A stretch of 64,000 bases of DNA from Utricularia gibba (GCA_002189035.1 NEEC01000013.1:3100001-3164000); one strand, 5' to 3'. Positions 1,694 to 30,122 are shown, numbered from the stretch's first letter. Numbers and translations: made by a program. Notes: generated by a model from the sequence alone, not told the origin.

Positions 1694-2920
1694 GAGACGC
1701 GGCTGCCAGGCGGCGGTGGAGCGTTCGCTTCTAGTTCTCCGTGGATCAAATTCATAATGCAAATGATTCTTGAAACTAGCTGTTAATGCATTTGTACAAG
1801 TGCCTTCTAACTCCATACAATGATTTCAAGAATCTGCAAAATACCCAGAAACAATGTGGAATCACAGAAAAAAAAAAAAAAAAGTTCAGAAAACTTGTCT
1901 AAAATAGATACCGAGTCCCCGAAGTCCTGACGCAGCTCAAGAAAGGGAAAGCATCTTCTCCTCAAAACTGTGATTCAAGATCATGGACACCTGCACACAA
2001 TGGACTTCACTTCAGTATTGTGTGACAGGCATCAATGATCAGAATACCTCCCCAAAAATGAATCTTGCGAGGCTCTGTCAACTGAAAGAAATCGTGGGAG
2101 TGGACGCCATCTTAGCATTGCGGGAGCAGATCTTAATGAAACTTTAAACATCCAAATCACCTACAATATTACGGTGTGGAGCCTTCAGCGCCATGTCAGT
2201 CCCTACATGAACAAAATTCTCAGCCTTCGTTGAGATAAACGAATCCTCTATAAAAGTCATACAGTGCATTACGATTCACTGAAGAATGCGATCCTCTATA
2301 TATTCTCCTGTTCCACCAATTTTTGCCTGGTTTGCCCGTGGCTGTTAAGGGAATGATTTATGCTAAATTTCCAGGGTGCTCTATCTCCATTTTCTGTGTT
2401 GTGTAGCTCTTTGTAGGTATACACATATCCGGATTGTCATAGATCGCTCATTAACAGCAAAATCGCCCAGGGACACCATCCTGTTTTTTTTTTTTTTTTT
2501 TTTAATTACTGGAGCAGAGCAAAATATAGATGCAGGGCTTTGATCATAAATCATGAAACTCATGCATGTATATGCATGCTTGCCATCAAATGGATTTTAC
2601 GCTCAGTGGTATAAATAGCGCATAACTAGAAAGGGATTTTGGGGTTTAGGAATGTATATCTCATACGAGAAAAACCAGAATTGCAGGTGAAGCAGACCAA
2701 TGACACAGGAAAAAAATAAGCAAGCATTCAGGCATAGCAGCACACCGGTACAGAAAACCAAGTAAGTGGGTAGTCACAGCCCACTGAAGACACACGTAGA
2801 AGCTGAAGCAACAACGAGTTTTCACATAACACATAATAAAAACACTTGATCATCATCACTCATACCATTAGAGCAATATCCTGAATCTTCTGAGGACCTT
2901 GATCTTGAATGCTTGTTATC

Positions 2921-7149: not shown

Positions 7150-7760
7150 TTGACACGATCTTAAGCAATGTAACCCAAGACTGCACTACCTCTAATCAAC
7201 AGAACAACCAACTTGCGAGTAACCAAGTTTGAAGATCAAAGAACGAAACAAGACGAATTTCAACGAGGAAATCCTTGCGGGAGAAAACCTCAGATGCTCC
7301 AGACTAGGCTGAAAAATCCACTATCAACGATGTGAATGATCGGTTCAATAACAGTTTCAAAACAGGTTTTAGAACCAAACAATCACAGCAAGATTCTGCC
7401 TAATCCTCACACAGGGGTTTTCTACAGAGCAAAACAGGAACACAGGCTTAAAGCCTTTCTGCTCAATCATTCACTGGATCGTTTTCTTGTAGAGATCCTC
7501 TTTTGGTTCTTTCAGATATTCTGAGACTCACGCGGATGTCTCCCCCTGCCCCCTAGGGGATTCTTAACGGTTAGCCGTTATTCATAGTGGGCTTTTCGTG
7601 GGCCTGGTATGAGACGGCCCACCACATTTATCACACCTCATACATTACCAAGTTTATATCTTTTGTTTTATTGCTCCGATCACAGTATCTGTTTACTTCC
7701 ACTCAACCGAAGCCGAGTCCAAGCTTTGTAACAGAGATTGCTCTTTCTTTCCATTTGTTG
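7150..7760 (-). mobile_element. Possible LTR or 3' flank of the copia relic
   Basis: Lies just downstream of the RNase H remnant. Contains ATAGTGGATTTT...GGTTTTCTCCCGCAAGGATTTCC on the minus strand, reminiscent of copia LTR U5 motifs. No second LTR or TSD was identified. Confidence 0.3.
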
Positions 7761-7799
7761 TGTCATGTTCTTTATATGGGTAAGGGTGCATCTGTCTTC

Positions 7800-9240
7800 T
7801 TAGATATTGGAGTCTTTTTCTGTCCACATTCTTTTTTTGAATAGATCGGCAATCTGATACGTTGTGGAGATGTGATGAGTGATCAAGTATCTAACTCGAT
7901 ATGCTTGCTACAAGCATGATAGATTGGCTTGATGGTGAGAGAGAGAGCAGTGAGGTTTTTCATAGTAGAGGCATGGCATTTCTTTGAATCAGACATTGAG
8001 ATCTCAAACAAGTAGTAGTCAGTCACATCACTTCAGCAGCTACATGCAGCATGGAATGATACTTGGCCCCTGTACTAGATCATCTTAAGATTATATGTTG
8101 CTTCTTTGAGTTCCACTTGGAGTTGCTTTTCGAGGTAAATTAGGCAGCATGTCCCACCATACCACCATCAGTTACTGGAAGAGTCTACGTCATGCTTGTT
8201 AGAAATTGAGATCCTTAATGCAGTGAAAAGCAGTTGCCTTGATGTAGTGAAAAGTTCGCATTGCTAGTTGTTGATGATACATTGTTGGTTGCTGCATGAA
8301 CTGAGACATATAATTTGCACCGAACACGATATCATGTTTCGTGAAGTGAAGGTACTGAAGTGGTCTAACCAGTGAGCATAAGTCAGTTGAATTGGATTGT
8401 TCAGCATCAAATCTGTGGCTTGCAGTTTGATCTTTGAGGGTTCTGGAGTCACTACCGGTCGACATTCTTTCATACTGAACATGTCCAAAATAGATAAAGC
8501 AATGTGAATTTCATTCAGTTAGACGTAATCCGTTACTTGTGTCCTTCACCTGAATGCCTAAAAAATGGTGTAACTCTTGTAGATCCTTCCTTCATCGCAA
8601 ATTCTTCTATCAATGACTGGAGGAGGGAAGCCAAGCGATCATGAGTACTTGCTACATAAAGTAACAAAATCAGTATTCCATGAGTAGCATGCAAGATAAA
8701 TAGAGAAGGATCTACAAAACTACATTTACAACCTTTGTGGAGTAGAACACGATTGAACCAACACAACACACGAAAGTCAGTCCTGCTTTAACCCGCGCAA
8801 CAGCACATGCACATGCTTGGGAGAATAGGAATCTGACAGGAACATACTTTCACTAATATTTCCATGCAACACCACGTTTTTTGCATCAAAGAGACACTGA
8901 TTACTAATCTTACTGTGTGTTGGTGAGAGATGGCCATCAATTTGATCATAGACAAGTGAATTGATGGCGTAATGCAAATTCCCGTTCCTGTGAGTCTTAT
9001 TTTTCAGTGCTTCCTATATGCCATGTGCTATGCCATCACACTCCAACCCAATACAAAGGTTACAAGATTCTTCTGACATTATGCCCATTTGGAAATCCAA
9101 CCTCTGATGCATTGGTTCTCTTGTGTTGCTGATGCATTTCTAGCATTGGTGGTGCTGCTGTCTCTCCGATCATGAGTTCATGGCTTTCGACTACGTGGAT
9201 AGTTGCAAGACAATAAGCCGGATGTGACAAAGTTGTAGAT
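7800..9240 (-). mobile_element. Degenerate Ty1/copia retrotransposon RT-RNase H fragment
   Basis: Broken-frame matches to copia pol: FDAKNVVLHGN (LDVKNAFLHG), LRGLKQ, VDPSLFILH..LLLYV, LQYLHFTKHDIVFGANYMSQFMQQP, an SST-AKY-like motif, and QIADLFKK. Many stops and frameshifts. Confidence 0.85.
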
Positions 9241-9689
9241 ATTGAGGGAAAAAGTGTTGCTCATCGTTGCCAAGCCAGCGTGTCTCTACGAAGCAGTAGA
9301 AGTCGATGCGCAAGAGGAGGAAGAAGAAATCATTGAGAGAGAGAGACTAATGCTAACAGGTGACGATGAAATGAAAGGGGCAGTAGGGAGAAGAGAGAGA
9401 AAGGCTACACATATTGGCTTCTAGTATTCGAGTGGAAACGTTTACAAACGCCTGGAACTTATAGAGCAAGAAAAACAAAAGAGTGGAGGTAATTTTGAAA
9501 CGTAGGCCACCTCGGGCTCATTTATAAAAGTGGTTACCAATCCACGTTAAAAAACTTACAGGATATTCAATTTTGTGTTACAGATCACCACCCTTATACA
9601 CACACTAACTTAAAAAAAAAAAAAGTGTTACACATCCCCTATTTTCTAAATCATCCGATCACGGGGAGCAGGAAGGCAGGCAGGCAGGC

Positions 9690-9699
9690 GCCACGTGGC
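9690..9699. promoter_or_regulatory. Perfect palindromic G-box upstream of LTPG
   Basis: GCCACGTGGC, about 220 bp upstream of the ATG at 9922. Confidence 0.5.
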
Positions 9700-9921
9700 G
9701 CATCGGTGCATGTCATTAATGGGGCAGGCAGGGGGGAGTAGCAAACGGATAGCAGCTGAGCTGATCGGCGCCAGAAATGGGGTTGATTTCAATGCCCCAA
9801 CAGTGTGCTCCATTTCTCACCATTAATTCCTTCACTTTTTCTCTTTTGGTCCGCATAGTCATAGTTATAGTGCGCTTCTCTTCCTCACTCCCTTGTTTCA
9901 CGCAAAGCAAAAACCTCAAGG

Positions 9922-10579
9922 ATGGAGAAAGCAACTGGGTGCACGACTCTGTATCTGCGGCTCCTTTCCTTCTTCTTCGTCTTCAGCCACGTCGCCGCCG
10001 CGGACGACTCCCTGATGACGACCTGCGCGCCGGAGTTTCAGAAGGTGACGCTCTGTTTGCCGTTCGTAACGGAGAAATCCACGCTGCCCACCAAGGAATG
10101 CTGCGACACTGTCGTCGAGCTGAAGAACACGAAGCCTGTGTGCATGTGCTTTTTTGTACAGCAGATTCATAACGGGACCAACGAGGCAACTAAAAGCTTG
10201 GGTATTAAGGAATCGCAGCTCCTCCGCCTCCCCGCCGCCTGCAAGGTCGTCAACGCCACCGCCGCCAACTGTCCTCGTAAGCCACCGCCGCCAACAGTCC
10301 CCCTTTCCTAAAAAAGAACAAAAAAAAAAAGACTTGCATTCACTCACACTCAAGCTCATTCCATACCAACTTCGCAGGTTTGTTGAATTTGCCGGAGAAC
10401 TCCAGCGACGCCGCTATCTTCGCTGATCCTCCCCGAGTGGCGCAGCAGCAGCAACAGTAAGCGGTTCTGGTACGGCGGCGAATGAAGCCTTTTGGGAAAA
10501 ACCTCAGGTTGTGTTTGTTGCGGGAATCAGTTTTTTAATCCAGTCGTTGGCCGCTACTCGTCCTGGAATGTATTTGTGA
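9922..10579 (+). CDS. GPI-anchored non-specific lipid transfer protein (LTPG1-like), with one apparent frameshift
   Basis: Signal peptide, 8-Cys motif (C-C-CC-CxC-C-C), exon 1 9922-10276, exon 2 from 10378 (RLLNLPENSSDAAIF). Adding one C at 10431-10434 gives a Ser/Ala linker plus a hydrophobic GPI tail (VVFVAGISFLIQSLAA...YL*). Confidence 0.85.
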
Positions 10580-11096
10580 GGTGGTATTGTTTCATGGGCG
10601 TCTCTGTGGTTCGCTGAAACAATCCTTCTCTAGCTGCGAAATCTGCATTGCTTTTCTTTCCTTTTTTTTTTTTTTGTGCGTGTGATACGAGTGTACCAAT
10701 AACCCTGAGGCGCCTGCTTCTTCATTTGACAATGCATAAAAACAGATGGTTATTGAAATTTCCAGATTTACTGCATCTGTGCTCAATTCTACAAGGCATC
10801 AAAGCAAGGGGTTGGTGATCCGTTTGCTTCAAAAAACGACCCCAGAGTTGTCAGGAATCTACCACCCATTTGGACAGCGTGATAGAGAGAATTCACTGCG
10901 GGTGGTGATTCCCCTGTATTCAAATGCAGACAGTTAACTACTACCATCAACCCGAAGCGGCTAGAAGAATCACACTTTAGAGATAAATATTCCAATCTTG
11001 GTGGTGGTCCTCCTCGAAACAGACCAGGGAAATTGAAAATAGGTCTGAAATCATGTCTAAACTGTACCCAAAAATTTTGGAGGTTTTAAAACTAGC

Positions 11097-12794
11097 TTAG
11101 TAGAAGAAACCGAACTGGGAGCTGGTTTTATCAGTCATTTCGGGACCATTTTGGTAGAACCCAGGCTGCTCGGGCTTATGTGTTGCCCTCAGCACCTGGC
11201 TGCTGCTTTCCTGATCCTGAGCCTCCTGGGTGGAATGTGCTGATGAGTGATGATGCCCTGAAAGCAAAAAATCCGGCAAAGCTTCTTCGGCTAGTCCCAG
11301 TCCGAGACCATACATGGCGGGCACCCGCGGCTCAGCTGCGGGAGGGAGCATGATTCCTTGGCAGTGAACTGGAGCGGGTAGTCCGCATGAACCCCAAGAA
11401 TTGCTGCTGTTGTTTGTTGACAGAAGAGAGAGAGCACGACCGTACTCTGTAGCTGCTTCCATATGGGGAGGAGGAGGAGAAGCGATGAATGATTCCTTGC
11501 AACCTAATAACCACCAACCCAGTTATGGTACTAGACTTGTAACCACAAACGTTCATCATTTTCTGGAGCATGAGCAAAGGGGTAATACTAAGACTGACCC
11601 GAGTCCAGAAAACCAGGTGTGGATATCTTGGATGAGAAAAGGCCGGCGCTGGTGGGGATATGCATCGCATGGTTGTTGGAGAGCTCGATTACTGGGGCAT
11701 GCATAGGATCAGTGATACCTTCATCTCCTTCACACCTGATAGAATGGTCTCCGCTCAGGGTAAACTTGGTGGTGCTGCAGTGTCTAGTGCTGATGTGTGA
11801 ACCATTGGTCAGGAAAAAACCCAGTTGTTCCCTTCCTCCTGCAATTCCAAAGGGATTAGATAGAATGCACCATTAGCCTTCAGGTCTTCTGTGACAGTGG
11901 ATGACGAAAATGCATTTAGAAGTAGTTTAGTGCCATTCCTGTCCTAGACAAGAATAAAAATTCCCCAACCACACCCAGGTGCAGTAACTCGATTCATAGT
12001 GCTAGACGTACCGTAGAAAGGTGACGAGGGGGCAGCAGAACTGAACAACATGCTTTCTTGCTGCGGCTTCCTACGACGAGCATTGTGATCAAAGAGCCTC
12101 CTCCTACAGCTGCGCTTCTTATCATCGAATTCCGACAGGTTATGGAACCTTCATCATACAGAATGAAGAGTGCTAACATCCATGAAAGAGAGTGACATGT
12201 GCGCGGTATGACATATTCTTACCTGCTGCACTGTTGGCAAAACCGGCGTTCAACACCGCCAACTATGACCTTGGAGCTTTTCGAATGATTGTCGCAAACT
12301 TTATGTTTCCGATGGTATTCCTTAGCAGTGGAGAGGTCGAGAGCACAGCCCTCAACAATGCAACGTGGGATGGGGCTACTCCTGTACGCTGATTTACTTC
12401 TGTTAGACGTACTCAGTTTTCCAGAGGAGGATGACGCCTTGTCATTTCCCACCGGACCGGCATTCTCAAAGTAGGTCCTCTTTCCCAGCTTCAGGCCGAT
12501 CAGGGGCTCCACCTCACCGAGTCCACATACCTCCGCTTCCTTCATCGAGTGTCTTGCAGAGTCTTTCGAAATCATGAGCTTGAAGGTCGGGTTCCGAGTC
12601 TCATCTCTTGTAGAAGATTCAGCAGAGGCATGGTGCCCGTCGGAGACGGACGAGAGATTGAAGGGCGAAGTGGTGTCAATTTCTCCATCCATCAGAAACA
12701 CGTCTCCCAACCCCAGCTTCCTTGGACCATATGTTGCTTTTGAACCAAAGGAAACAAGATTATCCCAATCCCATTTGCCATTCCAGTCCATCAC
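11097..12794 (-). CDS. SPL: SQUAMOSA promoter-binding-like transcription factor (SPL2/10/11 clade)
   Basis: Exons 12223-12794, 12012-12148, 11599-11838, 11097-11503. N-terminus [23 protein letters not shown], a complete SBP domain ([38 protein letters not shown]), and RALSLLS encoded by the miR156 site. Confidence 0.93.
11418..11437 (-). promoter_or_regulatory. miR156/157 target site in the SPL CDS
   Basis: The minus strand reads GTGCTCTCTCTCTTCTGTCA, the canonical SPL miR156 response element. Confidence 0.95.
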
Positions 12795-14575
12795 AACTCT
12801 GGTTGCTCCTCCTCGGGATCTCAGGGCTTCAGTATCCTGTCAGCAACAAACACCCATCCTGAACAAAGACCTTGTTCTGTTGTTGATCCACAGAATCAGC
12901 GAAAACAAAAAGAAATGACACACATGGCCGAAAGCAAACGCTATGAAACTGCAACCTATATTTCCAATCTGCAAGCGTTCAACCACGCCATCTCGAAGTA
13001 GCATTACCCTGTTTTCAGAAGCTGCATAAAACCAAAAGGCCATGAGAAGAAATCAGCCCCATCTCAAGAAAGCGTCACCAGATCAGGGAAGAGCCGTACT
13101 TGTCGTTTCAGCAAATGAAACTTTCGCTTCCCTACGCACCCCCTCTCATGCGTGGACCAGAGTGAAGAAATCTCCCACAATCTTCACCTATTTAATCACT
13201 TTACAGGGTACGATCAAAACTCTCCTTATCTTCTCTTTTTCCTTTTCTCCCTGTGAAAAAATGGGATTTCAGTACTACCCCACGCCGGAAAAGAGAAGTG
13301 CGGCCAAGCATGATTAGAGGCGCATAGAGACAAGCAAAAGATGTCCTTTATGTTCATGAATAATCTTAAAAGGAACCCGATACAAGATACTCCTCCTGCC
13401 TTCATTACCTTTCCAACATGACTTCACTGGCCCCCAAAAGCCAAAGCCAAAAAGGAAAATTACTACTTGGAAAAAAAAAAGAGAGAAAAGCATGACTTAG
13501 ATTCAGTGTATTGGGACCTGGTCAAAATCAAGGCTGGGTTGGACAGAACTGTGGGTTTAGACACCCTGCACTTCTTACAAGCCATACACAAAATCAACAG
13601 CAGTGTTCTTAAAAGCGGTGGCCATTGGTCGAAACCGCACCCACCGACAGTGTAGCTTGGCCACAGTCAAACCGACTCAACACTTGGTGAAGGCACCCAC
13701 GAATTAAAAAGCCGTTTGGAAGGGCAAAAATTGATCTTGGGTACACACACCTTTATCTCTTAAAGTGAGCAATAATATTTCGTTCGACAACATTTCCCTT
13801 GTTTCAGGCTGCCGGAGAACTTGGAAAAACAAAATGCACGTACTTTGATACAAACATAACATAGCAGTTCATTTATGAGAAGGCAACTGGAAAAAAAAAT
13901 GGTAAGAATCTGATGTACTGTACGGATAAAGGAGAATGAGTTCCCAATTGAATACCCACTGGGAAACAACAAAAAATTTCTCAACGCAACTCCCAAAGCT
14001 TGTTTTGTTTCTGCAAAAATAGAAATTACCACAAGGAAAACCATATGATTTTCACTTTCACCATCGTCATCGTCTTCCCATTTGAAAGCGTGTAATCATT
14101 TGAAGCGAAAGATAAGTTCGTTATCCTCTGAGAATCTATGTTTGGTTAAAGGGCGTAAAAAACCAAGGATGGGTGAAAAAAGAAACAAGTTACCTCGGTG
14201 AGTACAGAAGATAAGAGCAAGAAACGAGCTTGGATAACAGGGAGGGAAAAAAAACGAAAAATAAAAAGAGAAAGAGAAACGGGTAGCTGGGAATTGAAGA
14301 TAATGTCGAGAAAAGGCGAAGAAGGAATTGGAATTGGAGTTGGAGTTCCGATTACTGGACAAGAGAAAAGATGGAGGGAGCTGGCTGCGGAGCAGGCAGG
14401 GTATGGGCCTGCGTTAAGCTTTAATGGCGATTCGAGGTCGGAATAGGGTGCGGCCGAGTCCACAGAGGATCCACTAAACCAACGGCCCCGATTCGGCGAT
14501 GCCGAAAGGCGTGATCTGGTGGCGTCGGATCGGGTAGTCATTACTGATACCAGGATGGGGGTAACGAGACACTGA

Positions 14576-14759: not shown

Positions 14760-15144
14760 TTCCACGATGATTTTGTCCAGGCAACTGCGCATTGTAATGA
14801 ACCTGGCCTTTGTCTCCTATTACACCAAAACAAAGGAAAAGGAAATAGAAAGACTGCTTTTACAAAATTTCTGGTGTAAAAACGTTTGCAGGTGCGGGGG
14901 AAGGATTTATATTTGCAGTCGGCTCCAGGTGACGTGTACGAATCTGAGTGGTTGAATGCCTCTCGCTCCCCTCCCCTTCCCTCCCCTCGGCTCTTGTTTT
15001 TATTTAACAAAATGCACACGCGCTTTCAATCGCGTGTCTGTGTGTTCATCCTTGTAGCTTAGCAACGACTGGGAAAAGTTTGGGCTGCACCTGGGAATAA
15101 GGGAGCAAGCATTGAGGAGGACTGCCTCGCAAATGGAGTGACTG

Positions 15145-17181
15145 ATGGAGGAAGGGTTGCTCTTGAGGCAGCGTATGGGCGGATTGGAAGAGGGTTTGGA
15201 GGTTTATGGTTCTCCGGCTGCGCCATCTTTCGATTCTTTTAATGAGTTTCAAGCTCAAAGGCAGCTCGCATCTGGGAAACGGTCCGCCAGGTTTATACTT
15301 CGTTTCTTTGATTTCGATGCTGTTTTTTATTCCCGCCACGTTTAGTTTGACCTTTCGATGGGGTAAAAAATGCGATTCTTGTTCTTGTTTTGTGCTTTGA
15401 CCAGGACTCAACACAACTTTGCTTGGTTTTTCATTCTAGGGATTTTTTGTTGCTCGTTTCATCGGGTTACTGAGTTATTTGAGACTTGTTAAGATCGACT
15501 GTTTTCCTATTTGCAAAAAGTTCACTATTATGAATCGATTGTCGGAAAGCTGGGTTTTTTTTGCTCTTGTTTAACGACTTAATCGGCAGGGGCATGGTCT
15601 CTGTGAGCTTAATCAGCATGCCATTATTATTTTCTGTTTTCCCACTCCATATGTTTTTCTTGTCTTCTGAAAGTGATAGTTATCTTTGGATCATATTGTT
15701 TCTGTCTGGATTCATTCCACACATCTAGCCGCTTCTTCAGATCATGCATCCCTGGCTTGCAGCATTTGTGCTGGGAACTTTATGGAATCGATTCATCTGG
15801 TTTTGATTATTTCAATGAGCCTCTGTTTTTTTTTTTCCCACGACCCTGATTTTACAATGTGATTCCTCTTATGACATTTAGTTTCATTGTATGGTTTCCT
15901 GTTCATACCCGAACTCTTGGAATGTTAAGATTTTGACTATTTTGCAGGTGGGGAGTCTGCGATTCAGGAGCTAGCTCATTTAAATACGGCTGCCAAAATC
16001 CTTTAATGACAATAGGAAACTCTGAAAATATGAGAATTCTGGAACCCAGAAATCCTCCTAAGAAGGCTCGAAATGAGTGTAGCCCTGAAAACAAAATTGT
16101 GTCTGGAATCTCATCTGAAGTGATGGATGAGAATATCTGGAAGAAGTTTCCTGAAGACCTGTTTGAAGCCGTAATAGCAAGACTTCCTGTAGATGCATTT
16201 TTTCGGTTCCGATTAGTCTGCCGCAAATGGAACATGTTACTGAATTCTCCAAGTTTTTCCCAACAGTGTGCTCAAAAGAAGCAAGCTCAAACTTGGTTCT
16301 ACACTATGAGTCACACAAATAGAAGCATGGGGTCAATTTACGATCCTGCCTCGAAGAGGTGGTTCCATCCAACCCCACGGCTCCTTCCAAAAAAAAGAGT
16401 TCTGCCTGTGGCTTCAGAAGGCGGGCTTATCTGCTTCCTTGAAACCGGGGAGCGAAATCTCTACATTTGCAACCCTCTAACTCGGTCGTGCAAGCAGCTG
16501 TCTCCTATGTCTATTGGAGTCATGTCACGAGTGTCTGTTGGGATGACTCTTAACGGGCTCTCTACTCAGTCAGGTTACAAGATTGTACTGGTTTTTCATG
16601 GTGGGGAATATGGGATTTATGACTCCATCAGCAACTCTTGGATTCGCCCTGGAAACTTACCATCTGCTTGTCTTCCACTCACGCTCAACCGCAGGTCCCA
16701 TGCGGTTTGTATTGACAAAACTCTTTATTTTATGCGTCATAATCCTGATGGAATTTTGTCCTATGATGTGGAAAATGGGGTTTGGGAACAGCTTGCCATT
16801 CCTGCACCTCAACGTCTAAGTGATCAGATCCTTGCCGTGTGGGGCAGCAGGATCATGCTCGTAGGGTTGCTGACAAAAAATGCGGCTACCTGCATCTGCA
16901 TATGGGAGCTGCAGAAGATGACTTTGCTGTGGAAGGAGGTTGACAGAATGCCAAACTTATGGTGCTTGGATATTTACGGAAAGCACGTTAGAATGACTTG
17001 CCTTGGAAACAAAAGCTTGCTCTTGCTTTCCCTGCGATCACGGCAGATGAACTGGCTCATCATTTACGATGCAAGGACTCGTGAATGGGTCAAGGTCCCT
17101 AGCTTCGTCCGGCCGGAGGCTAAGAGGAGGCAACTCCTTTATGCCACTGGGTTTGAGCCTTGCTTGACTGCACTGCCTTGA
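15145..17181 (+). CDS. LCR: F-box protein LEAF CURLING RESPONSIVENESS / F-box only protein 6
   Basis: Exons 15145-15290 and 15948-17181. IWKKFPEDLFEAVIARLP F-box and LLTKNAATCICIWELQKMTLLWKEVDRMPN.WCL..YGKH, which is diagnostic of LCR. Carries a miR394 site. Confidence 0.93.
16935..16954 (+). promoter_or_regulatory. miR394 target site in the LCR CDS
   Basis: GGAGGTTGACAGAATGCCAA, one mismatch from the complement of miR394 (UUGGCAUUCUGUCCACCUCC). Confidence 0.95.
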
Positions 17182-17615
17182 CTGTCTGCTTTTGCTGTGT
17201 TTTTTCATTTTTTTTTCTTTTTGATCTGAATATCTCTTCTTCTGTATACTAAGTTTTTCTTTCAAGTACTGGGCCTTTTATGTTTTGGTTATGTTTTCGC
17301 TAACCCATGCCAAGCTTTCCAAGGATTACTTGGCTTATAAAGTTTTCCCTTTTATTTCATGACAGTGCACATTGCATTTGAAAAAACAGAATGAGAATCA
17401 GAATCTGGATTAGAAACAAGAAACTTAGTAATACAAAGTAGCTGACGCAACGTGTTCCAACATAGAGTGGGAGGGGGGCACAGAAGTCTCACAGAAGTTC
17501 GGGATAGCATGAAAAAACAAAGACCATCTTTATGAATATAATTGCACACAGAAGTTGGAGATGATTCAACTGGGAATCAAGAGATGAACTGGTCTGGTTC
17601 CATCCGGAGGAGAAA

Positions 17616-20600
17616 TCACAGCATCCAGCTTGCCATGTAGTTTGCGTTAACACTTGGACCGGCTCCTCCGGCAGCTGCAGCTGATAGGTGATCTGGCTGG
17701 TAGCTGAGCACGAGAAGAGTGAAACATCAGACAGAATAGGCTGAAGTCTGTGGAAGAACAAGGGAGATTGCATGTTGTGTTACCCGATTTGCAGTGTTGG
17801 CTCACAGTCGAGAGGATGAAAGAAAACATCTGGCTGGGTCTGGTGATGAGGTTGCCTTCCATAAGCAGCATCGGAAGCACTTGCATTCCACTGCAGGCTT
17901 ATCTGGCTTCCTTCCATCAACTGTAACAACACGGACAAACCTTCTTTCAAGCAATGATAGGAAAGTGTGGAGGATTCAAACAAACACCAAAGACAAATAT
18001 GATTACCCTCTGCTTCAAGTTCTTGTTAGCTTCATTGAGAGCGTGCTCCTGACCATGAAAACAACATAAAAGACCAGTGATACTTGGATTAAAGCAACTT
18101 ATTGATGTATTTTGAGAGCGCCAACATGAAACCATGGCGGATTTGGATACCTTTCTCTGAAGGTCTGTGAGCGTGTCTAGCATTGCTTGAGTCTGAATAA
18201 AAAAGTGTTGTCATGAAAAAGTTGAAGCATTGGAGTAACTCCGACCCATAACCACAGCAAAAATTCACATTCTCAGGAATGAAACAGGATACTAAGCTAC
18301 AAACCCGAGTTGATCGGATCAGCTTGAGTGACGAATCAAGTTGCCTCTCCAGCGATTCAAGTTCTTTGCTGTTCAAGGGGCCAAGATCCTCACCAAGAAG
18401 ATTCCTGGGCATAGAGTAAAAACACCAGCAGTAATCACTAGCGAATGCTTCCTGGTTACTTTAACAAGATGGCCCTCTGATCTATAAGTTCATGCTCTAA
18501 GTCGTGTAAAATATGCTACTTAACAACTGAACGCAGAAATTCTGCAGTGGAGAATTGCAACACTCAATGAAGCTCCAAACCTTTGGGTTCGCTGCAGAGC
18601 TTCATATCGTGCTTTAAGCTTCAAATACTCCTGCTGGCTACTCAGTTCCTGAATCAATATTTTCCGTTGAGAATTTGGTAGTCATGAAATCCACATAGAA
18701 TAAATCCGCATGTAATAATAAAACGAAGAGGAACAGAAGAAATCTCCTCCCAAAAATCCAGGAATTCTGCTACATAACAAGTAGGAAAGGTCTTATCTTT
18801 TGGAGGTTGACGAAATTTATTTGCAAAAGTTGCAACGACATTGCATTTCAGAAATATTCCCAAAATTCGGCGTAAAAGCAAATGGAAACAGCTGATAACA
18901 AAAAAAATGCAGCAAATTCTACTATCACAAGTTTCAATTCTAGACAACTAAAAATCATGAGTGTTAAATCTTGTACGACTCGGAGAATTTGGGCAGAAAA
19001 TTAAGCCCCAGAAAGAAAAAAGTGCTAAAATCTATAGTGAATAAGACAAGAACAGATTTAGGACAAAAGGTGAGATTTGAGAGAATCTTGTAAGAAAACG
19101 GCTGTAATATTGTTACCTTGTTTACATCTCTATACATATTCTATTTGTTCTTATTTAAGGCAAACTCAAGGTCTACGGTCTGAAGAATTACTGTCACCAC
19201 GAGTTTTTCTAACTAATTTTCCCTTCAAAGGAAGGATACCCCTTACACATGCAAGACCAATATCGCTGATTGACGTATTTGTCTCCAATAATCTCTCCTG
19301 ATTCATGAAAAATGTTCTATTTAGTACAACTGCAATTTTCTAACTTCACCTTTTAAGCAACGGCAAGTTATTTACCAGAGGTTTCTGATTTACCACTGTG
19401 TGACATTTGATGAAAACCCCACTCTACTAGTCTTTCCAGTCTTCATTACCCGGTAAGGCTCTTCTTCACATCTTTTTTTTTTTTATCACATAGTAGCTTG
19501 CAAGATCTGTAAGACTAGCCTTTCCAAAGGGTCTACCTTTCGTTTCTATTCAACACAAAAAATAAGTCTGACCATAAAAAATGCCAACTTTTCTAACAAA
19601 TGAACTGCGTGCTTCATTTTTCAGATTGCACTATTGGTAAAGGACGTCAAGCATGACTACCACAAAGAGCTCGAGGGTTGAAAGGTTTAAGGGAGTTGTC
19701 CCACAACAAAATGGACACTGGGGAGCGCAGATATACACGAACCATCAAAGAATATGGCTTGGTACATTTAAATCAGAGGTTGATGCAGCCATGGCTTATG
19801 ATAGTGCGGCCATCAAGCTAAGAAGTGAAGATTCGCAAAGGAACTTCCCTTGGACGAGTATAACTGCCCAAGAACCTAGTTTTCAGAGTCTTTTAACCAA
19901 AGATGCAGTTCTGAACATGATCAAAGATGGTTCATTCTCGTCCAGGTTCGCTGATTTCCTGAGGAGTCGACAAGGTGGAGCAATTGATGAAGGCTCGAAA
20001 GGCTTATCCCTCCATAGAAATGATGATTTCTTGTGCACTTTGCTCTTCCAGAAGGAGTTAACACCAAGTGACGTTGGGAAGCTTAATAGACTAGTGATCC
20101 CTAAGAGATATGCTATCAAACATTTCCCGAATGTTCCCGAATCTAGTGAAGCTATCAATACAGACTCGGAAGTAGGCAATGGAGTACAGCTTGAGTTTTT
20201 TGATAGCCAGATGAATTTATGGAAATTCCGGTATTCATACTGGAAGAGCAGTCAAAGTTTCGTCTTCACAAGAGGCTGGAGCCAGTTTGTGAAGGAGAAG
20301 AGATTGCGACAACAAGACATCATTGCTTTCTACTTGTATGAAAGCAGAAATGGAGGTTGTTGGAGACAGCCATTTTTTATGATTGATGTTGCCAGGAAAA
20401 ATGATTCAGAAAACAACGAAACAAAGAGGGAAAAGGACGTTTCACTGGAGCATCCAAGTACCGGTGAGGAGGAGAAAGGTTTCCGGCTTTTTGGTGTTCA
20501 GATTAACTGACCTGAGCTTGCTCCAGCTTCACTGTGAATCCTACTTTCTATTGCCTTCATCCATAATTTGGTAATTCTTAATTTATTATCTCAAAGTTGA

Positions 20601-22425
20601 TCATTGTAAGTATTCCTTTTGCATTTCCAATGCAAGAGGTAGGAAACTACTTGACTTCCCTTTCGTTCCTTTTAAGTGATAAGCAAGTGTTTTGATAATT
20701 TGACTAAACCCAAATTTCACACCTTGCACTTAGTAAATTTTAAGCATGAACCACATAAAGACACTTCATCAGGACCTTATGGTTATTCACTTATTGTTAG
20801 ACAATAAAACATCAACAACCTGAAACAAAATATAGCAATAACAGGATACGTAGTAGTTACCAGTGCCTCCCGGGTAGAAACATTTGTCTCTGGTGCTCCA
20901 TAGTTGGATTTCTGGTATCTCTCCAGTGTCTTGAGCATGCTGCTAAATACCCAGGAAAAAGCAATAAAACAAAAGTTATATTTCAAAAACATTCATTAGG
21001 ATCTTTTCTGAAGCAGAAAGCAACTGTCCAATCACCCGTTTGGACAGAAAAAAAAAACTGCCTGAACAGATAACATGTGTGTAAAGGAGAGAACTTTCTC
21101 AATTTCCGTGAGATAAATCGAGGAATCTTCTTACAGTTCATGCATTCGCACATGAAATCAAGTTCCTGAACGTAGCCCAACGGTAAGTTGCAGATTGTCA
21201 GGATTACATAAATAATTGTTTGCAGCTTTTAAAGATCTTTGAGATGAGGCTAATCTGAAGACCCCGTGATTAAAAAAATATTTTTTAAAACAAGGAATCG
21301 CACAGTTCACGGGATTCTATTGAGAAGAGAAGTAAATTTCCCAAACCAAACCCTAGGGCAAAATTCCCAAATCCGGCTTCCTCCTCACAAAGTTTTAGTT
21401 AGGAGTATCCCAGGAACCCATGAAAAAAAGTTTTAATAAGTGAAACTTTGTGCAGTAATTAAAGACATGCGAGAGTGCGGGACAGATTCATATCTTTGAA
21501 CTTTCAACACCAAGCCCTAATTGCAAAGGCAAAATTCCCAAATCCAATGCAATACAACAAAATGAAAGGAAGAAAAGCTCAGAGAGAGGGGACCGGCGGG
21601 ATAAGCTAAAACTGAGGGTTTGAAGAAAAATTCTCGGGAAAAGAAAAGCTTTAAAGAAGGGGCATCTCCATTGACCCTGGGGGTTCTGCCATGAAGGGAA
21701 GATCATGGGAAAAACCCTAGTAACCGCGTTTTGTCCAAAGAAAAAAAAAAAAAACCATGTATATGTATACGTATCTATCGCACTGTGAGATCTTTCTGGA
21801 GCCTAAGAAAAGGTTGAATGAAGCTTTCTGGGCTTGTGCTCTCTCTCCACTGAACCAGAGACAAGCAAAGGATCAACGGAGAAGAGTTAGGTATTTGCTC
21901 GGAAGACATGGATCTTGTATCTTCAAAAACATAGATCACCATTGAAGAGACAAAGGAAAGAAAAAAGAGAGGTAACGTTGAAGGTAGAAGAAGTAAGTGA
22001 TGGTTTTTGGAGTTGCAGATCTAGGCAAACCCACAAGCGCAGAGCCCCATAACAATCACAGAAACGGCAAAAAGAGAGAAAAATGCTTTTCTCTTTTTCC
22101 ATCAAGATTGAATTTTGGGACCAAACAAAGCCACAAATCTATGAAAACCAGAATCTTTCGGACTAAAAATTGGAGAGTAGAGAAAGAAAAGGAAAAGAGC
22201 CGTGGTTGCGGCTGGTTGATGTCTGGGGTGGTTTTGATACCTAGAGCTACTGCAGAACTCGTACAGCTTTCCCCTATTGGAGAAGATAATGAGTGCAACC
22301 TCGGCGTCGCAAAGAACGGAAAGCTCGTAAGCTTTCTTCAAAAGCCCATTCCTCCGTTTGGCAAAAGTCACCTGCCTGTTGATCTTGTTCTCTATTCTCT
22401 TGAGCTCAACCCTCCCTCTCCCCAT
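17616..22425 (-). CDS. SEP3: MIKC MADS-box E-class protein SEPALLATA3 (FBP2/DEFH200-like)
   Basis: Eight exons: 22241-22425, 20861-20939, 18581-18648, 18305-18404, 18151-18192, 18007-18048, 17784-17920, 17616-17703. All are GT-AG and in frame. MADS box, [21 protein letters not shown]-box, [15 protein letters not shown] and [11 protein letters not shown] motifs. Confidence 0.95.
19653..20510 (+). CDS. AP2/ERF and B3 domain RAV-type transcription factor (At1g50680/At1g51120-like), nested antisense in SEP3 intron 2
   Basis: Uninterrupted 285-aa ORF with an AP2 domain ([36 protein letters not shown]), a B3 domain ([35 protein letters not shown]) and a C-terminal RLFGV repression motif. Confidence 0.93.
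   Translation: MTTTKSSRVERFKGVVPQQNGHWGAQIYTNHQRIWLGTFKSEVDAAMAYDSAAIKLRSEDSQRNFPWTSITAQEPSFQSLLTKDAVLNMIKDGSFSSRFADFLRSRQGGAIDEGSKGLSLHRNDDFLCTLLFQKELTPSDVGKLNRLVIPKRYAIKHFPNVPESSEAINTDSEVGNGVQLEFFDSQMNLWKFRYSYWKSSQSFVFTRGWSQFVKEKRLRQQDIIAFYLYESRNGGCWRQPFFMIDVARKNDSENNETKREKDVSLEHPSTGEEEKGFRLFGVQIN
21357..21545. repeat. Exact 18-bp direct repeat in SEP3 intron 1
   Basis: GGCAAAATTCCCAAATCC at 21357-21374 and 21528-21545. Confidence 0.8.
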
Positions 22426-23658
22426 CTCTCTCTTTCTCTCAACAGAGACAACAACGGCGAGTTGCTTCTCTTTCTTTCTTGTACAGCCATCCTTCTTTAT
22501 ACACTGTCTTTTCGTACGTGTAGGTGCGTGGGCGCGCGTGTGTGCGTGTATACATACATACATACATATGCGCACAAGCATCACCATTCTCACGTATGCG
22601 TACTACGTCTCTGAAGGCCAGGGTGGCACACCCACACATTCTCAAAGCTTCATCATCCCCGGGCGGTGAGTGATGGCCCATCGGAAATTAATTTGTGTGG
22701 TTCCGCAAAACACTCCACTCGGCTCGGCTCCGGGTGTACGTAGCAGTAGTATCGTAGAGAGGGAAATGAATGAAGGGTGTTGTTACGTGTTACCATCATC
22801 ATCATCCGGCCCTCCTGGTCCCCAAGGAGATGAGGATGCGTGACCTGACCTTGCTCATTTTCTTGATGCCAAGCAATCCATTACCGCCCGCCCTAACCCC
22901 GCAACTTCTTTTCATTTGATTCACGGGCATGGGCATCCCGCATCCATCTAGAAATGGTCTCTGTTCTTAACCCGGGAGGGGGAGGGGGAGGGGGGCAAAA
23001 GCGTCAGAATGATGAGGCGCGCGCAGGTCGCGTCAGACTTGTTAGCCTGAAACGAGGAAACACCCTCTCCTTCGCCTCCCCATAATTCAAAGCCCACTCC
23101 CTTTTGGGAAACTCCTCTTTAAACTAACTTGTTACGTCCATCTGGGGCCCACCCCCCTCCCATCCACCTCTCTGGTTTGGGCCCGGGTGCGATGCAGCAA
23201 CATTTTCATTTGTTGCGGATGGATGGATGGATGGCCCGCCCAGCAGGCATTGGGCTGGAAGGTCTCGTGTGAAGAGCAGCCAGCCTCCCTCCCCTGTCTC
23301 ACTACCACTATTTATTTTAACTGTTGTCATCAAAAAATGGAGCCGCCATTGTCCCAACAGACCTCAGAAGCTGGGGATTCAGGCCTTGGAGTAAGTTGTC
23401 AGACGTAGGCAGATTGGCTCCTTGTGGGCCTGGAGACCATGGGTACAGAAGTGCTCCAGTTACCACGTACACAATGGGGGCTGGCAGCGGCTATTAAGAG
23501 AACTAATCTAGGCCTATCACCACAATAAAAGACAACCAGTCCTTTTACATGATTGGTCGGTCGTGTACATTGTTATATAAGCAACTTTTTAGCGCACGAA
23601 TTTGGGAGGGTGAAAAAATGCTTACAGCAAGCAACCTTTTGACCTCATATGCCAGTCG

Positions 23659-26600
23659 TCAAGTTCCCTTGGAACTAGTCTGCAGTAAAATGTAAATCAC
23701 TAATATTCAAGCCACATATCACCAGTAACAGATAATGCACATGCGACAGCAACTGATATGATTACCCGTGATTCCAGTATCTTTTTGCTCTCGCTGTAAT
23801 ACTGATTTGGATGATTAATTCCCTCATCACAGGATGCACCATGAAGAGCTTCAAATGTCAGCGTGCAAGCCAACTGCAAAAAAAAAAAAAAAGAAGAATT
23901 GAACTTAGACTTTTAGTCCATACAATAATAATTCTAAAAAGGCATAACCTGATAGTGTCGATTCCGAGCTTTTCCCAGAATGTCCTCAGATGCACGGTTG
24001 CCAACTCCCACATTGCTTAGGGCAGCTCTCAAATTCTCTTCACTGCACATGCGACGCCGAAAAGCATCATCAATACGGCATACATGCCCAAAAAACGCCA
24101 AAAAAGTGCACCATGCTTAACAAATACATTTTAGATAGATATAATCAGCCCCTTCATAAAAACCAAGGCCAAAGAAAATGGTATCTAGTGATAGGCGACT
24201 ACACGAAATCTGAAAATATTTCAATTGTAAGATGATGCATAGCATAGAAATGACCTGAATTGACGAAATGGGCAGCCATGATGTTCTCCCACGCCTGGAG
24301 TCGAAGATATGACCTTATGGCATGAATAAGGGAGTAATCCTGCATTGTTAATGAATTTAATCAGCTCAAGTGCTGAAGACGCCATCGACGTTGCCTCTGA
24401 AACCCAAAAATGGGGCCGCACTGAGAAGTATCTTTTTGAATATTACAGACTTAGCAAGGAATCCTGAAAACCCAAACACGAGGAAAAATGGTGAACATGG
24501 GAAAAGTACATTACCGCCCTTTTCCCTTCTTTCCCATACGAGTGCCGTATGCTGTAAGCATATTCCTTGTCAAACCTTTCAGCAGAAACCTACGCAGTAC
24601 ACGTATGCTTTTACTGAGGATACACATTTCCAAAAGCAAAAATTAAGACAAAGATAATTGCGCTTTTCAGTTCCCTCTCAGATTATGTCCAAAATAACTA
24701 TGCGTGATTAAAACCGTACAAAGCAGGATGAGATGATTCATCATACACGATAAATGTATTCTTTCTGTGGCGTTATTCATGTTTCATTAAATTGGATACC
24801 AGAACGTATCATCACCTTCCTGGTGAATTCTGATTTCCAGAAAGCAAGAGCATCATCCAGTTTGAGTCCAATTCCCTAAGAATGAAGTGGAAAGAAAATC
24901 AGCCTTTTGAAAAGGAATGAAGCATCTTCAAATTTCAACTTTTACTACATAAACCAGTGCATAAAGGAACAATAGAAACAAAATCTAAGCTTCAGAAAGG
25001 AGATATCGCTTCAAAATCACTACAACTGGCCTTCGGCATGGAAGTATGTGCACCTTAAAAAAGAGTCCTAGTTGCATACGGCCTCCATACTTCAAGTGAT
25101 GATCATCTCTAAGCTGCACGAATAATTACAAAAGAATAAGTGATTGCGCTTGGCAGAAAAAACCACTGGACTGGAAAGTAATAACAGACTTGATACCTTA
25201 TAAAATAAGTGGCGCATACATAGAGGGAATGAGCTTTTAGCAACTCGATCAATATCCGTCAGTGATAACTCCACAAACTCTTTAGGCTAAAGTGGCATTC
25301 GTGGATTAACATACGTTTCGAGGAACTGAAATAGCAAGGACGGATATAAACTTCCTCACGAACCTGGCTATAGTCAGGACCTAAGTAGCTTGTGGGCAGG
25401 GCTTCAATGATCTGCGCAATGCAAACAGTTAGATTTTTCTTGACATAAATGGGCATAAAACGCACAACTTTTTCTGATGCATACAGGCGTCAGCCGGTCT
25501 TTCTCTTGCTCTTTGATCATAGATGTCCATTTTCTAAAAAATAATGACTTTCCATTAGTTACATAATGCTAAACAGAAAAATAAGTCTTTTTGACTAATA
25601 AACCTCTAATGTGAATGAATATAAAATAAAAGAGTCAAAACGTGATAAGGTCATTAGAATCCTTTTTCTAAAAACAAATGGATGACCAGTACATAACGGA
25701 AACGTTTCATACCGGTTAGTAAGTACTAGGGCTTTTGAGAGATGGCTCCGGTATTGTGTCATCAGGAGGTGAACCACCTGCAGAAGGCCAGGACTCAACA
25801 ATGATATGGTGGAGTTTATCTTACACATACATCTTTTATGGCCAAAGTAAATAACCTGATTCATTGCAACATATGCATAACCCTTGTGAATGAACACCTT
25901 GCGATCTCCGACTAGATTAGGAACTTCTTCAAATGGCACCTTTATTAAACATTGTATCAACAGTTGTACGAAACTAGTGAAAAGACCAGTAAATCTAAAA
26001 TGTTTGCAATTCATTTAACAGGGTTACTCCGACTGGCAAAGAGAAAGTTAGAATGAACAGGAAGGTTACCTTGTAGAACATTGAGTCAGCTGTGAGGGTT
26101 CAGAGAAGAAAAAAACACAAATCAACAACCACAGAATCCTTCCGTCTCAACCAATGCAAATTTGTCAGGAAAATGTAGTACATACCACTGGATAAAGATT
26201 GGCCTACAGAACGAACCACCTGATTCAGTTTGTCCTTGACAGCCTGAAACAAGAAGACTCGTTGTCATTCCATTTAGTATAACCGTATGAAGGAATGTCC
26301 AATAAAATGCAGTACAAAGGCTTTGCTGTTTCATGCAATGACGCCTCTTAAAGGCAGGATGAAAGAATTCCTGACCTCGTATTCTGAAGAGCTAACAGCT
26401 TTATACGGAAGGTCAAACTCCCCCAATAATGCTCTCTAACAAGAAGCCGAATGAGCAAGATTAGCCATCAATACAGCCCCACAAGCACTGCAGTAGTAGA
26501 ACAGCTTTTTAAGTTTGATCGGTGCGTACCTGCGCCTCGGGGGTTTCTAGCAGAAAACGATACTGGAACAAAGCAGTCTCCATGGAAAGAAACCTCCTCC

Positions 26601-27657: not shown

Positions 27658-30122
27658 CTACAATTCGGGGAATAAGAATAGCGGCTGCCCCTTCCCCCTC
27701 GCAAAAATATTGCTCTGCAAATACGAATCTTTGTCTGTTTGTAAAATGCCACGTAACGCCGACCATAAACCCCAGGAGTTTCTGCCCAACACTGCTGGAG
27801 CAGCTTGGTCGGGCGACTCGGTGAGGGGTGGACGTTGCTCGTCGCTCTCTGTAGCTTCATATATTCCTGCGAGCCCCTATAAAATCACACCTCAGGGATG
27901 CAACTCGAGCAGAGATGAATGATACTGGGAGGTACTTACTACCTTCAAGCCCCATCCAAGGGCGGCACTCTGGCTCTTTTGACGTCCATTCGCATGACCT
28001 GGGGATGGTGGCTCCACTGATGGGCTAGCGGGCAAAAATAGAGCCTGCAAAGTGGAAAGCGCAACCGCAGTCTTTAATAGCTTGATCCCTCAATTCACAG
28101 AGGGTGTGTATCTATGGACATACCCTTAGAGGAGTTGCTTCTGAACATTCAATGGCCGACATGGAAGTGATTGAGCTAGTACCCTACAAGATCCATTCTC
28201 AGAATTATATCAAGCATGACAACGGCGACATAAAATCAAATGAATATTATCCTTGCCCTTGCCTCAATCTGCACGGTGCTTCGATCACTTTTAATATTCC
28301 TTGCAATAGAAACCAAATTCTTCAATCCATCAAGCGTCTCATCCTGCACAAATTACACGATGCAAGAGGCTATAAATGCTAGAAACCAACACCGGTCACC
28401 ATCTAAGAGTCTAGGAACCTGTAATGCAGCTGCTGAAGTGATACCTGCTGATCCTCTATGCTGCTAATTGTAGTATTCTGCAGCAAAAAAGGCGCGGTAT
28501 CACGGACCACAGTTCTGTAAAACCCATCTAGGAAAGTAGATTCATGGAAAGAACATCATTCACCAGAGATTGAACTTTTTTGTGAATAAACTGCACATCT
28601 GCCCCAATTTGGTTTAGATCAACACGAAGAAGAGGAACCTGCAGAGATTCAATGAGCGACGGTCTCAGTGAAAAACACGCACCCAAACTCTAAAAATCAG
28701 CAAGGATGCCTCACATCTTCTTTAATGGAAGAAGTATTCGCCAAACATTCATCAACTTTGGAATTGACTGTATTAATTCTTGCAGACAAATTCTTCCTTG
28801 TAGCCTAGAAAAGCATAACAAAAAAATGAAAAATTATTAGTCAACACCTTTTTCCTTTATATCAAATAAAATGAGTTTCATGCATGCCCCATAAGAAGTA
28901 TACGGCTTACATTGCCTAATCACACAAAGTGAAAAAAAAAAAAAAAAACTAAAGAAATATCATTCACATTTGGAAAAGAAAACTTGCCGCAACCGAGGAA
29001 TAAACAGTTTCAAGCTGCTTAGCAACAGAAGCGCATGCATCATTTAATCCACCCCTCGTTGCGAGCATCATGTCCGGTATTTTAATACCCTAGTTGCAGA
29101 TACTGCTAAGCGTATGACCCTTGAAAATTTATGTAGCTAATGAAGAAAAAAGCCAATTACCTTCCACCAAATGTAGCCAGATCCAACAACTACTACAAGA
29201 ACTACAAGACCAAGCTTACGAGAACCTAATTAACATACGGCAGGTCAACAAGAGCTCTGCTCTAAGATCACACAATCAACATACACATGCAAATTAAAGG
29301 AATAAAAACCAAGGCCCAGAACCACAAAAAAAAAGCAGATACTTGAAGAGTCGAGGAGAAACATATGGATTACACCTTCAGAGCACTAGCACTAAAGATG
29401 CTATGTGCCCAACAGTGAATGAACAAATAATGTGTAAGCGGTTTGTAATTTTCTCAAACGATAAATTAGGGCATATCAGAACTTGGCAGAAACCTGATCG
29501 ATTTTCCGTGACAATGGTTAAGCATCCGCTTGAGGATGCAAGGATTTGCAGCTCCCTTCGCAAGCTATTAATCTGCAGAAATGTAATATTCAACTAAATT
29601 CAGCCAGTTGAGTTGAATAGTAAATGCCATTGCTACAACATGCAATATTACAAGCCACGCGTGCTGTTTGCTGATCAGGAAAAATCAAAGGGAACCCACA
29701 AGAGAACCAACAGCAACCTGTTGCATCAAAACTTCATTCTTGGGATTTGAACCCGAAAAGGACGAATCATCTCGCCCAAGTGGATTTAAGACAGTCTGCT
29801 TGTAGAAAGACACGTCATAAGTAATTTGTTAAGCTGAAAAATTGTTAGACATCTCGAGATGACGCCATGGAGAACCACCCCTACTGAAAACTTATAAAAC
29901 TACCTTAATCGCACCAGAAAGAATATCAGCTAACCGCCCTTCTTTAGCAAGAACTGTCCCCAGATAGCCTACGAATGTTTTTATGATTATCACAACATTG
30001 GGGACGAGAAACGCCGGCACGAGAACCATAGTGCCCAAAAACTTTATTAAATACCCCGATCAAATGATAGAGCACTAACCGGCACCGAGGAGGAACGTAA
30101 ACTTGGCGAGAGGAAGCGCCAT
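27658..30122 (-). CDS. DUF1664 family protein
   Basis: 13 exons assembled by hand: MALPLAKFTFLLGAGYLGTVLAKEGR, INSLRRELQILAS, VVVVGSGYIWWKGIKIPDMMLATR..L.DACASVAKQLE, a coiled coil, and GWGLK. Two GC-AG introns. Not visible in the ORF track. Confidence 0.85.

Follow-up and report, generated by a model that had tools for sequence, protein, structure and literature searches.

An Antisense RAV Gene Nested in SEP3 Intron 2 of Utricularia gibba: A Probable Ancient Gene Pair of Eudicots

A SEP3 Gene with a Second Gene in Its Second Intron

The locus described here lies in a stretch of 64,000 nucleotides (nt) of Utricularia gibba DNA (GCA_002189035.1, NEEC01000013.1:3100001-3164000), referred to below as the window. 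Its minus strand carries a canonical and complete MIKC MADS-box gene of the SEP3/AGL9 type (22425-17616, 8 exons, coding sequence of 741 nt, 246 amino acids), and the second intron of this gene contains, on the opposite strand, an intronless gene for a RAV-family transcription factor with AP2 and B3 domains. The SEP3 exons measure 185, 79, 68, 100, 42, 42, 137, and 88 nt and hold no internal stops, and all seven introns have GT..AG boundaries. Intron 1 is 1301 nt long, intron 2 2212 nt, and introns 3-7 are 176, 112, 102, 86, and 80 nt. The initial annotation, made from the sequence alone, had joined exons 2 and 3 in frame across an intron of 2.2 kilobases (kb), and its coordinates proved exact; its remark that most introns are about 80 nt long describes introns 3-7 (80-176 nt) but not intron 1. 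The uninterrupted open reading frame (ORF) of 285 amino acids that it had placed antisense in intron 2, with AP2 and B3 domains and an RLFGV motif, is matched in Pfam and in PDB and does contain the motif. Host intron 2 leaves 1004 nt on the 5′ side of this ORF and 350 nt on its 3′ side (Table 1).

The protein encoded by SEP3 exon 1 is 100% identical over 61 amino acids to that of exon 1 in Erythranthe and Coptis SEP3, homologues of exon 2 are recovered by tblastn in Genlisea, Vitis, Erythranthe, Tetracentron, Coptis, and Aristolochia, and the PDB matches to exon 4 are SEP3 chains only (4ox0, 8cra). A structure of 8 exons and 7 introns is that of SEP genes across angiosperms (PMC9656651). The window gene shares it with the SEPALLATA3/AGL9 clade, along with the MADS and K domains and a SEP3-type C-terminus, but differs in that its intron 2 contains a second protein-coding gene. 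Judged by its sequence, the gene is a member of the SEP3/AGL9 clade, with a predicted floral E-class function.

Several further features surround the coding parts of the host gene. Intron 1 holds an exact 18-nt direct repeat (21357-21374 and 21528-21545, spacing 171 nt), which lies within two longer similar stretches and could be a duplicated regulatory element, and a poly-T tract is found at 21728-21768. Upstream of the SEP3 start, at 22450-23500, the GC content is unusually high (0.50-0.54 vs. about 0.40 for the window), and GTAT/CACG microsatellite-like runs lie immediately 5′ of the ATG. At the other end, an intronless F-box/Kelch gene of 391 amino acids (16006-17181, plus strand; Pfam F-box 4.4e-8, Kelch_6 4.3e-12) is convergent with the 3′ end of SEP3. 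With their stop codons (17181 and 17616) just 435 nt apart, these two genes may overlap in their 3′ untranslated regions (3′UTRs).

The Guest Protein and Its Subfamily

The AP2 domain of the guest ORF scores below the Pfam gathering cut-off, while residues 9-103 match the solved AP2 domain of TEM1 (PDB 7et4) at 4.3e-19; in many orthologues, too, the Pfam AP2 match is weak. The B3 domain matches the solved B3 domains of TEM1 (7et6, 3.2e-30) and RAV1 (1wid, 3.8e-29). An [R/K]LFG[V/I]-type motif recurs in 111 of the 120 best homologues; the R/KLFGV core of the B3 repression domain has been defined, and its role in repression described, in earlier work (PMC4836749). From its domains and this motif, the guest protein is a putative DNA-binding repressor. 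Its best match is the Genlisea aurea protein M569_12025 (67% identity). The residues preceding the AP2 core number 11 in the window, 19 in Genlisea, and approximately 35-45 in other Lamiales, a progressive shortening of the N-terminus in Lentibulariaceae that parallels genome miniaturisation.

The RAV family splits into two groups, with RAV1, TEM1, TEM2, and RAV1L in group A and At1g50680 and At1g51120 in group B; the latter were barely detectable and behaved differently in Thellungiella, the sole species studied (PMC4836749). Among the 120 best matches to the guest ORF, nearly all named ones are At1g50680-like or At1g51120-like and the rest are uncharacterised, although one (P0102) carries the depositor label "Transcription factor RAV1"; the names TEM1, TEM2, and At1g13260 are absent from these 120. 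The automatic names of the matches, together with a tree built without group-A sequences, suggest that the guest belongs to RAV group B.

With the At1g50680 and At1g51120 proteins of Arabidopsis, the guest shares the AP2 and B3 domains, a single uninterrupted ORF, and a C-terminal [R/K/M]LFGV-type motif; it differs in having RLFGV, where group B in Thellungiella has M/KLFGV (PMC4836749), and in its very short N-terminus. With TEM1, TEM2, and RAV1 of group A it has in common the same two DNA-binding domains, to which its likeness to TEM1 is restricted, and the RLFGV core, but these proteins form a separate subfamily. The link to the TEMPRANILLO family drawn in the initial annotation is not supported: orthology to TEM1 (At1g25560) or TEM2 (At1g68840) was rejected, there being no TEM-named match among the best 120 and the named matches being group-B-like. 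Since the role of TEMPRANILLO in flowering was shown for group A and the guest appears to be a group-B RAV, the flowering-repressor role cannot simply be transferred to it.

Selection and the Conserved Upstream Block

All ten orthologous RAV ORFs examined are open. Synonymous saturation leaves the ratio of nonsynonymous (dN) to synonymous (dS) divergence undefined for most pairs, the usable ones being window-Genlisea, window-Primulina, and two others. The initial annotation had left it to such a comparison whether the nested ORF evolves neutrally, and it does not: the window-Genlisea pair has a dN of 0.174 and a dS of 2.39 (saturated), giving an omega of approximately 0.07. By this measure, the guest ORF is under strong purifying selection.

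Conservation extends to a noncoding block upstream of the RAV start codon, detected by blastn and in alignments. In blastn comparisons, it is 78% identical to Genlisea over 59 nt (E 1.8e-8) and 71% identical to Erythranthe (E 1e-4). Its core, AATCTCTCCTGA, is invariant in the nested loci and is partly kept upstream of a Primulina RAV gene that stands free of SEP3. Because the block accompanies RAV where SEP3 is absent, it is likely a RAV promoter or 5′UTR element and not an intronic enhancer of SEP3.

No flanking direct or inverted repeats of the kind left by transposable elements were found around RAV, and no Rfam RNA families in 15000-25000. Recent retroposition, or carriage of RAV by a transposon, was considered and rejected on the grounds of the missing flanking repeats and, decisively, of the deep conservation.

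Distribution and Age of the Nest

The genomic surroundings of RAV orthologues were inspected, and SEP3 exons were located in them by tblastn with the SEP3 protein of the window. Species were thus sampled from the RAV side only, and no monocot or ANA-grade orthologues came up. In five further species, spanning Ranunculales, Trochodendrales, Vitales, and Lamiales, RAV lies between SEP3 exons 2 and 3 on the opposite strand (Table 1). Because the layout recurs in five other species, each with its own assembly, chance is excluded. The nest, which the initial annotation had proposed to date by tblastn, is thereby found in Lamiales, Vitis, Tetracentron, and Coptis, and since Ranunculales and Trochodendrales diverge before the core eudicots, the nest can be dated to the eudicot common ancestor.

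The same comparison bears on whether the nest is an artefact, that is, a misassembly or two partial MADS genes flanking an ordinary intergenic RAV gene. The annotations of Genlisea, Tetracentron, and Coptis, where MADS-box and K-box models stand apart on the two sides of RAV, would speak for such an explanation. We nevertheless consider it exceedingly unlikely, given that exons 1-8 yield a single uninterrupted SEP3 of 246 amino acids with canonical splice sites, that six species with independent assemblies show the identical layout (as a single gene model in Vitis and Erythranthe), and that the window holds no second set of MADS/K-box exons.

Table 1. Positions of the SEP3-RAV pair in the window and in five other eudicots
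Feature	Position	Strand	Remarks
SEP3 exon 1, MADS domain, begins at ATG	22425-22241	-	Pfam SRF-TF 5.7e-28; GT donor at 22240
SEP3 intron 1, 1301 nt	20940-22240	-	Boundaries GTATCA..TAGCAG
SEP3 exon 2, 79 nt	20939-20861	-	Joins exon 1 in frame
SEP3 intron 2 (host intron), 2212 nt	18649-20860	-	Boundaries GTAACT..ATTCAG
SEP3 exon 3, 68 nt	18648-18581	-	Homologous exon downstream of RAV in every nested locus
SEP3 exon 4, K domain, 100 nt	18404-18305	-	30/33 identical (91%) to Arabidopsis SEP3, PDB 4ox0/8cra, E 2.6e-11
SEP3 exon 5	18192-18151	-	102-nt intron follows
SEP3 exon 6	18048-18007	-	86-nt intron follows
SEP3 exon 7	17920-17784	-	80-nt intron follows
SEP3 exon 8	17703-17616	-	C-terminus SEP3-type, ..GPSVN.NYM..W, like Vitis and Aristolochia SEP3
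Conserved noncoding block	19267-19301	+	352-386 nt upstream of RAV ATG; blastn and alignments
RAV ORF, intronless, 285 amino acids plus stop, uninterrupted	19653-20510	+	Whole ORF within SEP3 intron 2 (18649-20860)
RAV AP2 domain, residues 11-58	19683-19826	+	Pfam AP2 2.3e-6, 28.2 bits, gathering cut-off 33.3
RAV B3 domain, residues 132-231	20046-20345	+	C-terminal to AP2; Pfam B3 1.5e-21
RAV RLFGV core, residues 278-282	20484-20498	+	Read from translation; C-terminus ..FRLFGVQIN
AATAAA, possible RAV poly(A) signal	20803-20808	+	Motif scan; 293 nt past stop, 53 nt before SEP3 exon 2 boundary
Genlisea aurea, L001	exon 2 4097-4008; RAV 2715-3560; exon 3 onward from 1749	antisense	K-box-only model
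Vitis vinifera, L003	exon 2 17651-17550; RAV 10127-10999; exons 3/4 7718-7434	antisense	Single annotated MADS gene spans RAV
Erythranthe tilingii, L010	exon 2 11270-11190; RAV 10001-10936; exon 3 onward 8456-8388	antisense	MADS model of 245 amino acids, 7468-12843
Tetracentron sinense, L011	exon 2 13080-13006; RAV 10001-11059; exon 3 onward from 6744	antisense	SEP3 as two models
Coptis chinensis, L012	exon 2 12658-12563; RAV 10001-11068; exon 3 onward from 9196	antisense	SEP3 as two models

A different arrangement is seen in the magnoliid Aristolochia fimbriata (L013), where SEP3 exons 2-8 lie together at 18510-13078 on the minus strand and RAV lies at 10552-11460 on the plus strand, tail-to-tail with SEP3 and 1.6 kb past its stop. 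Because the Aristolochia RAV adjoins SEP3 convergently, the linkage of the two genes may predate the nesting. A convergent adjacency of this kind was probably the precursor of the nest.

The window RAV and that of Genlisea are sisters in an IQ-TREE analysis (SH-aLRT 98) and fall within Lamiales (99), a placement expected for a member of Lentibulariaceae close to Genlisea, such as Utricularia. The terminal branch of the window RAV is long (0.42 vs. 0.15 for Genlisea). At least two paralogous RAV-B lineages are present in core eudicots, one side of the tree holding the asterid clade of the window plus, weakly, Vitis and a rosid clade that includes Populus.

Another linkage at SEP3 touches on this locus. 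The nest of Erythranthe tilingii is followed immediately downstream by an FLC-like MADS gene (L010 1-1328, minus strand; its MADS domain starts MGRKKLEIKRIE), which fits the SEP3-FLC tandem microsynteny of Ruelens et al. 2013, as cited in PMC4852290. On that account, the tandem resembles the SEP3-RAV pair as a deeply conserved linkage at the SEP3 locus, but it joins paralogous MADS genes, whereas RAV is an unrelated transcription factor gene inside the SEP3 unit. No second MADS gene, FLC-like included, was found in the 64-kb window, and the FLC-like neighbour seems to be missing from it.

Loss of the Nest

Populus no longer has the nest, nor does a syntenic Primulina copy. The RAV copies examined from Populus, Nelumbo, Cinnamomum, and Primulina have neither SEP3 exons nor a gene model spanning them within 10 kb. 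The free Primulina RAV adjoins a DUF1664 gene (L002 13053-16739) that matches window 28552-30122 on the minus strand, in the same order and orientation. This collinear neighbour makes the Primulina locus syntenic with the window; SEP3 has been lost from it, probably from one of the copies left by a duplication. In Arabidopsis, At1g50680 and At1g51120 are free-standing genes elsewhere on chromosome 1, far from SEP3 (At1g24260), which is not known to hold a guest gene.

In Nelumbo nucifera, another MADS-box gene (L006 19292-21101, plus strand) lies 8 kb downstream of the free RAV-B copy on the same strand, and its MADS domain is 84% identical to that of SEP3. A second RAV-B paralogue is also present in Nelumbo (P0151), and so is one in Cinnamomum (P0126).

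Origin and Persistence of the Pair

We consider it highly probable that the locus is an ancient and conserved nested pair, in which SEP3 hosts an autonomous, intronless group-B RAV gene antisense in its second intron. The nest would have come to this Lentibulariaceae-like genome by inheritance from the eudicot ancestor. An intronic promoter of its own, marked by the conserved upstream block, most likely drives the guest, which would be transcribed toward SEP3 exon 2, exon 1, and the SEP3 promoter, i.e., head-on against transcription of the host. Intron 2 would have been kept at approximately 2.2 kb in an otherwise short-intron gene because the RAV transcription unit must fit into it. Entrapment would be the simplest account of the long persistence of the pair, because deletions or rearrangements that freed the guest would likely harm an essential host. 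Release would then occur mainly after duplication, when one copy becomes free to lose SEP3, and losses after duplication fit entrapment.

Several points weigh against this reading. Entrapment is an argument from parsimony. The sampling covers eudicots and magnoliids, and the Aristolochia adjacency may be either ancestral or derived. The Vitis RAV has a weakly supported place in the tree (SH-aLRT 80), and for this reason the orthology of the Vitis and Lamiales guests is carried mainly by their shared position. RAV is only presumed to be expressed in this organism; when RNA evidence is taken as the share of sampled 31-mer words contained in each run, the organism-A RNA runs X1, X4, X5-X8, and X11 have 0.00 of the RAV words. 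Little follows from this absence, given how small the runs are (25-29 million letters) and how weakly group-B RAVs are expressed in Thellungiella (PMC4836749).

The other word shares concern the host. In four small organism-A RNA runs, the share of the words of 18300-22700 is 0.10-0.12, and the SEP3 exons and 5′UTR alone would give approximately 410 of the 4370 31-mers of this interval, about the observed share. Along with the canonical in-frame splice sites and the layout shared by other species, this exon-like share lends indirect support to a host mRNA that would be spliced across the guest. The values for X1 and X4 fit the presence of SEP3 mRNA without RAV mRNA in those samples; the word shares are no evidence of mutual exclusion of the two genes. 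RAV words do occur in two metatranscriptomes of another label, at shares of 0.08-0.09.

One alternative suggested by the missing RAV words is that the ORF has fallen silent in this genome and survives as a relic, either unexpressed or decaying, whose frame is still open by chance. The assembly collection contains no record of the exact protein, its N-terminus is shorter than those of its relatives (11 residues before the AP2 core), and its terminal branch is long, all of which would be in keeping with decay. Yet the reading frame runs through 285 codons without a stop, both DNA-binding domains match TEM1/RAV1 strongly, the C-terminal motif is intact, dN lies far under the saturated dS, the upstream block is conserved, and part of the ORF is present in the two metatranscriptome runs, so that a relic is very unlikely.

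A second alternative, which corresponds to the two-gene floral switch of the initial annotation and can hold alongside entrapment, is that the nesting is itself functional, with head-on transcription, antisense RNA, or shared chromatin making SEP3 and RAV mutually exclusive and selection retaining the arrangement. Intron and orientation have been kept in Ranunculales, Trochodendrales, Vitales, and three families of Lamiales, even in very compact genomes, and the word shares of X1 and X4 are compatible with SEP3 being on and RAV off. Neutral entrapment, however, equally predicts long retention, and the missing RAV words are a weak argument here too, the runs being tiny and group-B RAVs barely detectable in Thellungiella (PMC4836749). 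The free Primulina RAV, moreover, persists with the core of the upstream block after the loss of SEP3, and the Populus RAV is also free. The two Arabidopsis group-B genes are not known to lie inside SEP3 either. CArG boxes and RAV-type CACCTG/CAACA motifs, scanned as hints of cross-regulation, do not help the case, since their counts at the locus are at or below chance (CArG, 1 vs. 0.6 expected; CACCTG, 1 vs. 2.6 expected), and the sole CACCTG lies in SEP3 coding exon 1. On this balance, functional coupling is unlikely.

It would be bolder to propose that selection has maintained the SEP3-RAV nest as a cis-regulatory module approximately 130 million years old, in which convergent guest transcription across SEP3 exons 2 and 1 and the SEP3 promoter, on the one hand, and host transcription across the guest, on the other, exclude each other, and we regard this as distinctly improbable. 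If it were true, eudicots would possess a built-in bistable switch at the locus of E-class floral identity, and control of that locus would have been rewired wherever the nest was lost.

Novelty and Implications

Nested genes are a known type of arrangement, of which the SEP3-RAV pair is a new example. Protein-coding genes hosted in introns have been discussed for animals, with transcriptional interference proposed as a consequence (PMC3933685, PMC3192792). The plant pair resembles these in that an intron of the host encloses the entire guest, which is encoded on the opposite strand and has been conserved for long; it differs in that the animal cases involve very large introns, whereas here the host is a compact plant regulator and both genes encode transcription factors. 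Full-text searches of the literature on SEP/MADS evolution and synteny and on the RAV family returned no mention of a RAV gene inside SEP3, subscription-only papers lying outside these searches. As to the novelty that the initial annotation left in question, no description was found, but the nesting is widespread and already appears as overlapping gene models in Vitis and Erythranthe. Because the nest is shared across eudicot orders, its novelty as a single case is lower and its evolutionary interest higher.

The pair is noteworthy for its age, for the identity of its host, and for the splitting of SEP3 models in several annotated genomes. In public annotations, Tetracentron and Coptis have MADS-only and K-box-only models flanking RAV, and Genlisea has a K-box model only. 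Such split or truncated SEP3 models are an annotation artefact caused by the nest and can distort counts of the MADS-box family.

SEP3 is among the most studied plant developmental genes, and here it carries a transcription factor guest that is conserved across eudicots. Experiments aimed at SEP3 intron 2 or at RAV by CRISPR, transfer DNA (T-DNA) insertion, or virus-induced gene silencing (VIGS) may affect both genes, and the idea of cis-coupling between the floral activator and a putative repressor is directly testable in tractable species such as Erythranthe and grapevine. As a rare, datable, and long-lived plant nest, with a plausible precursor in Aristolochia and several independent resolutions, the pair makes entrapment and selection testable against each other.

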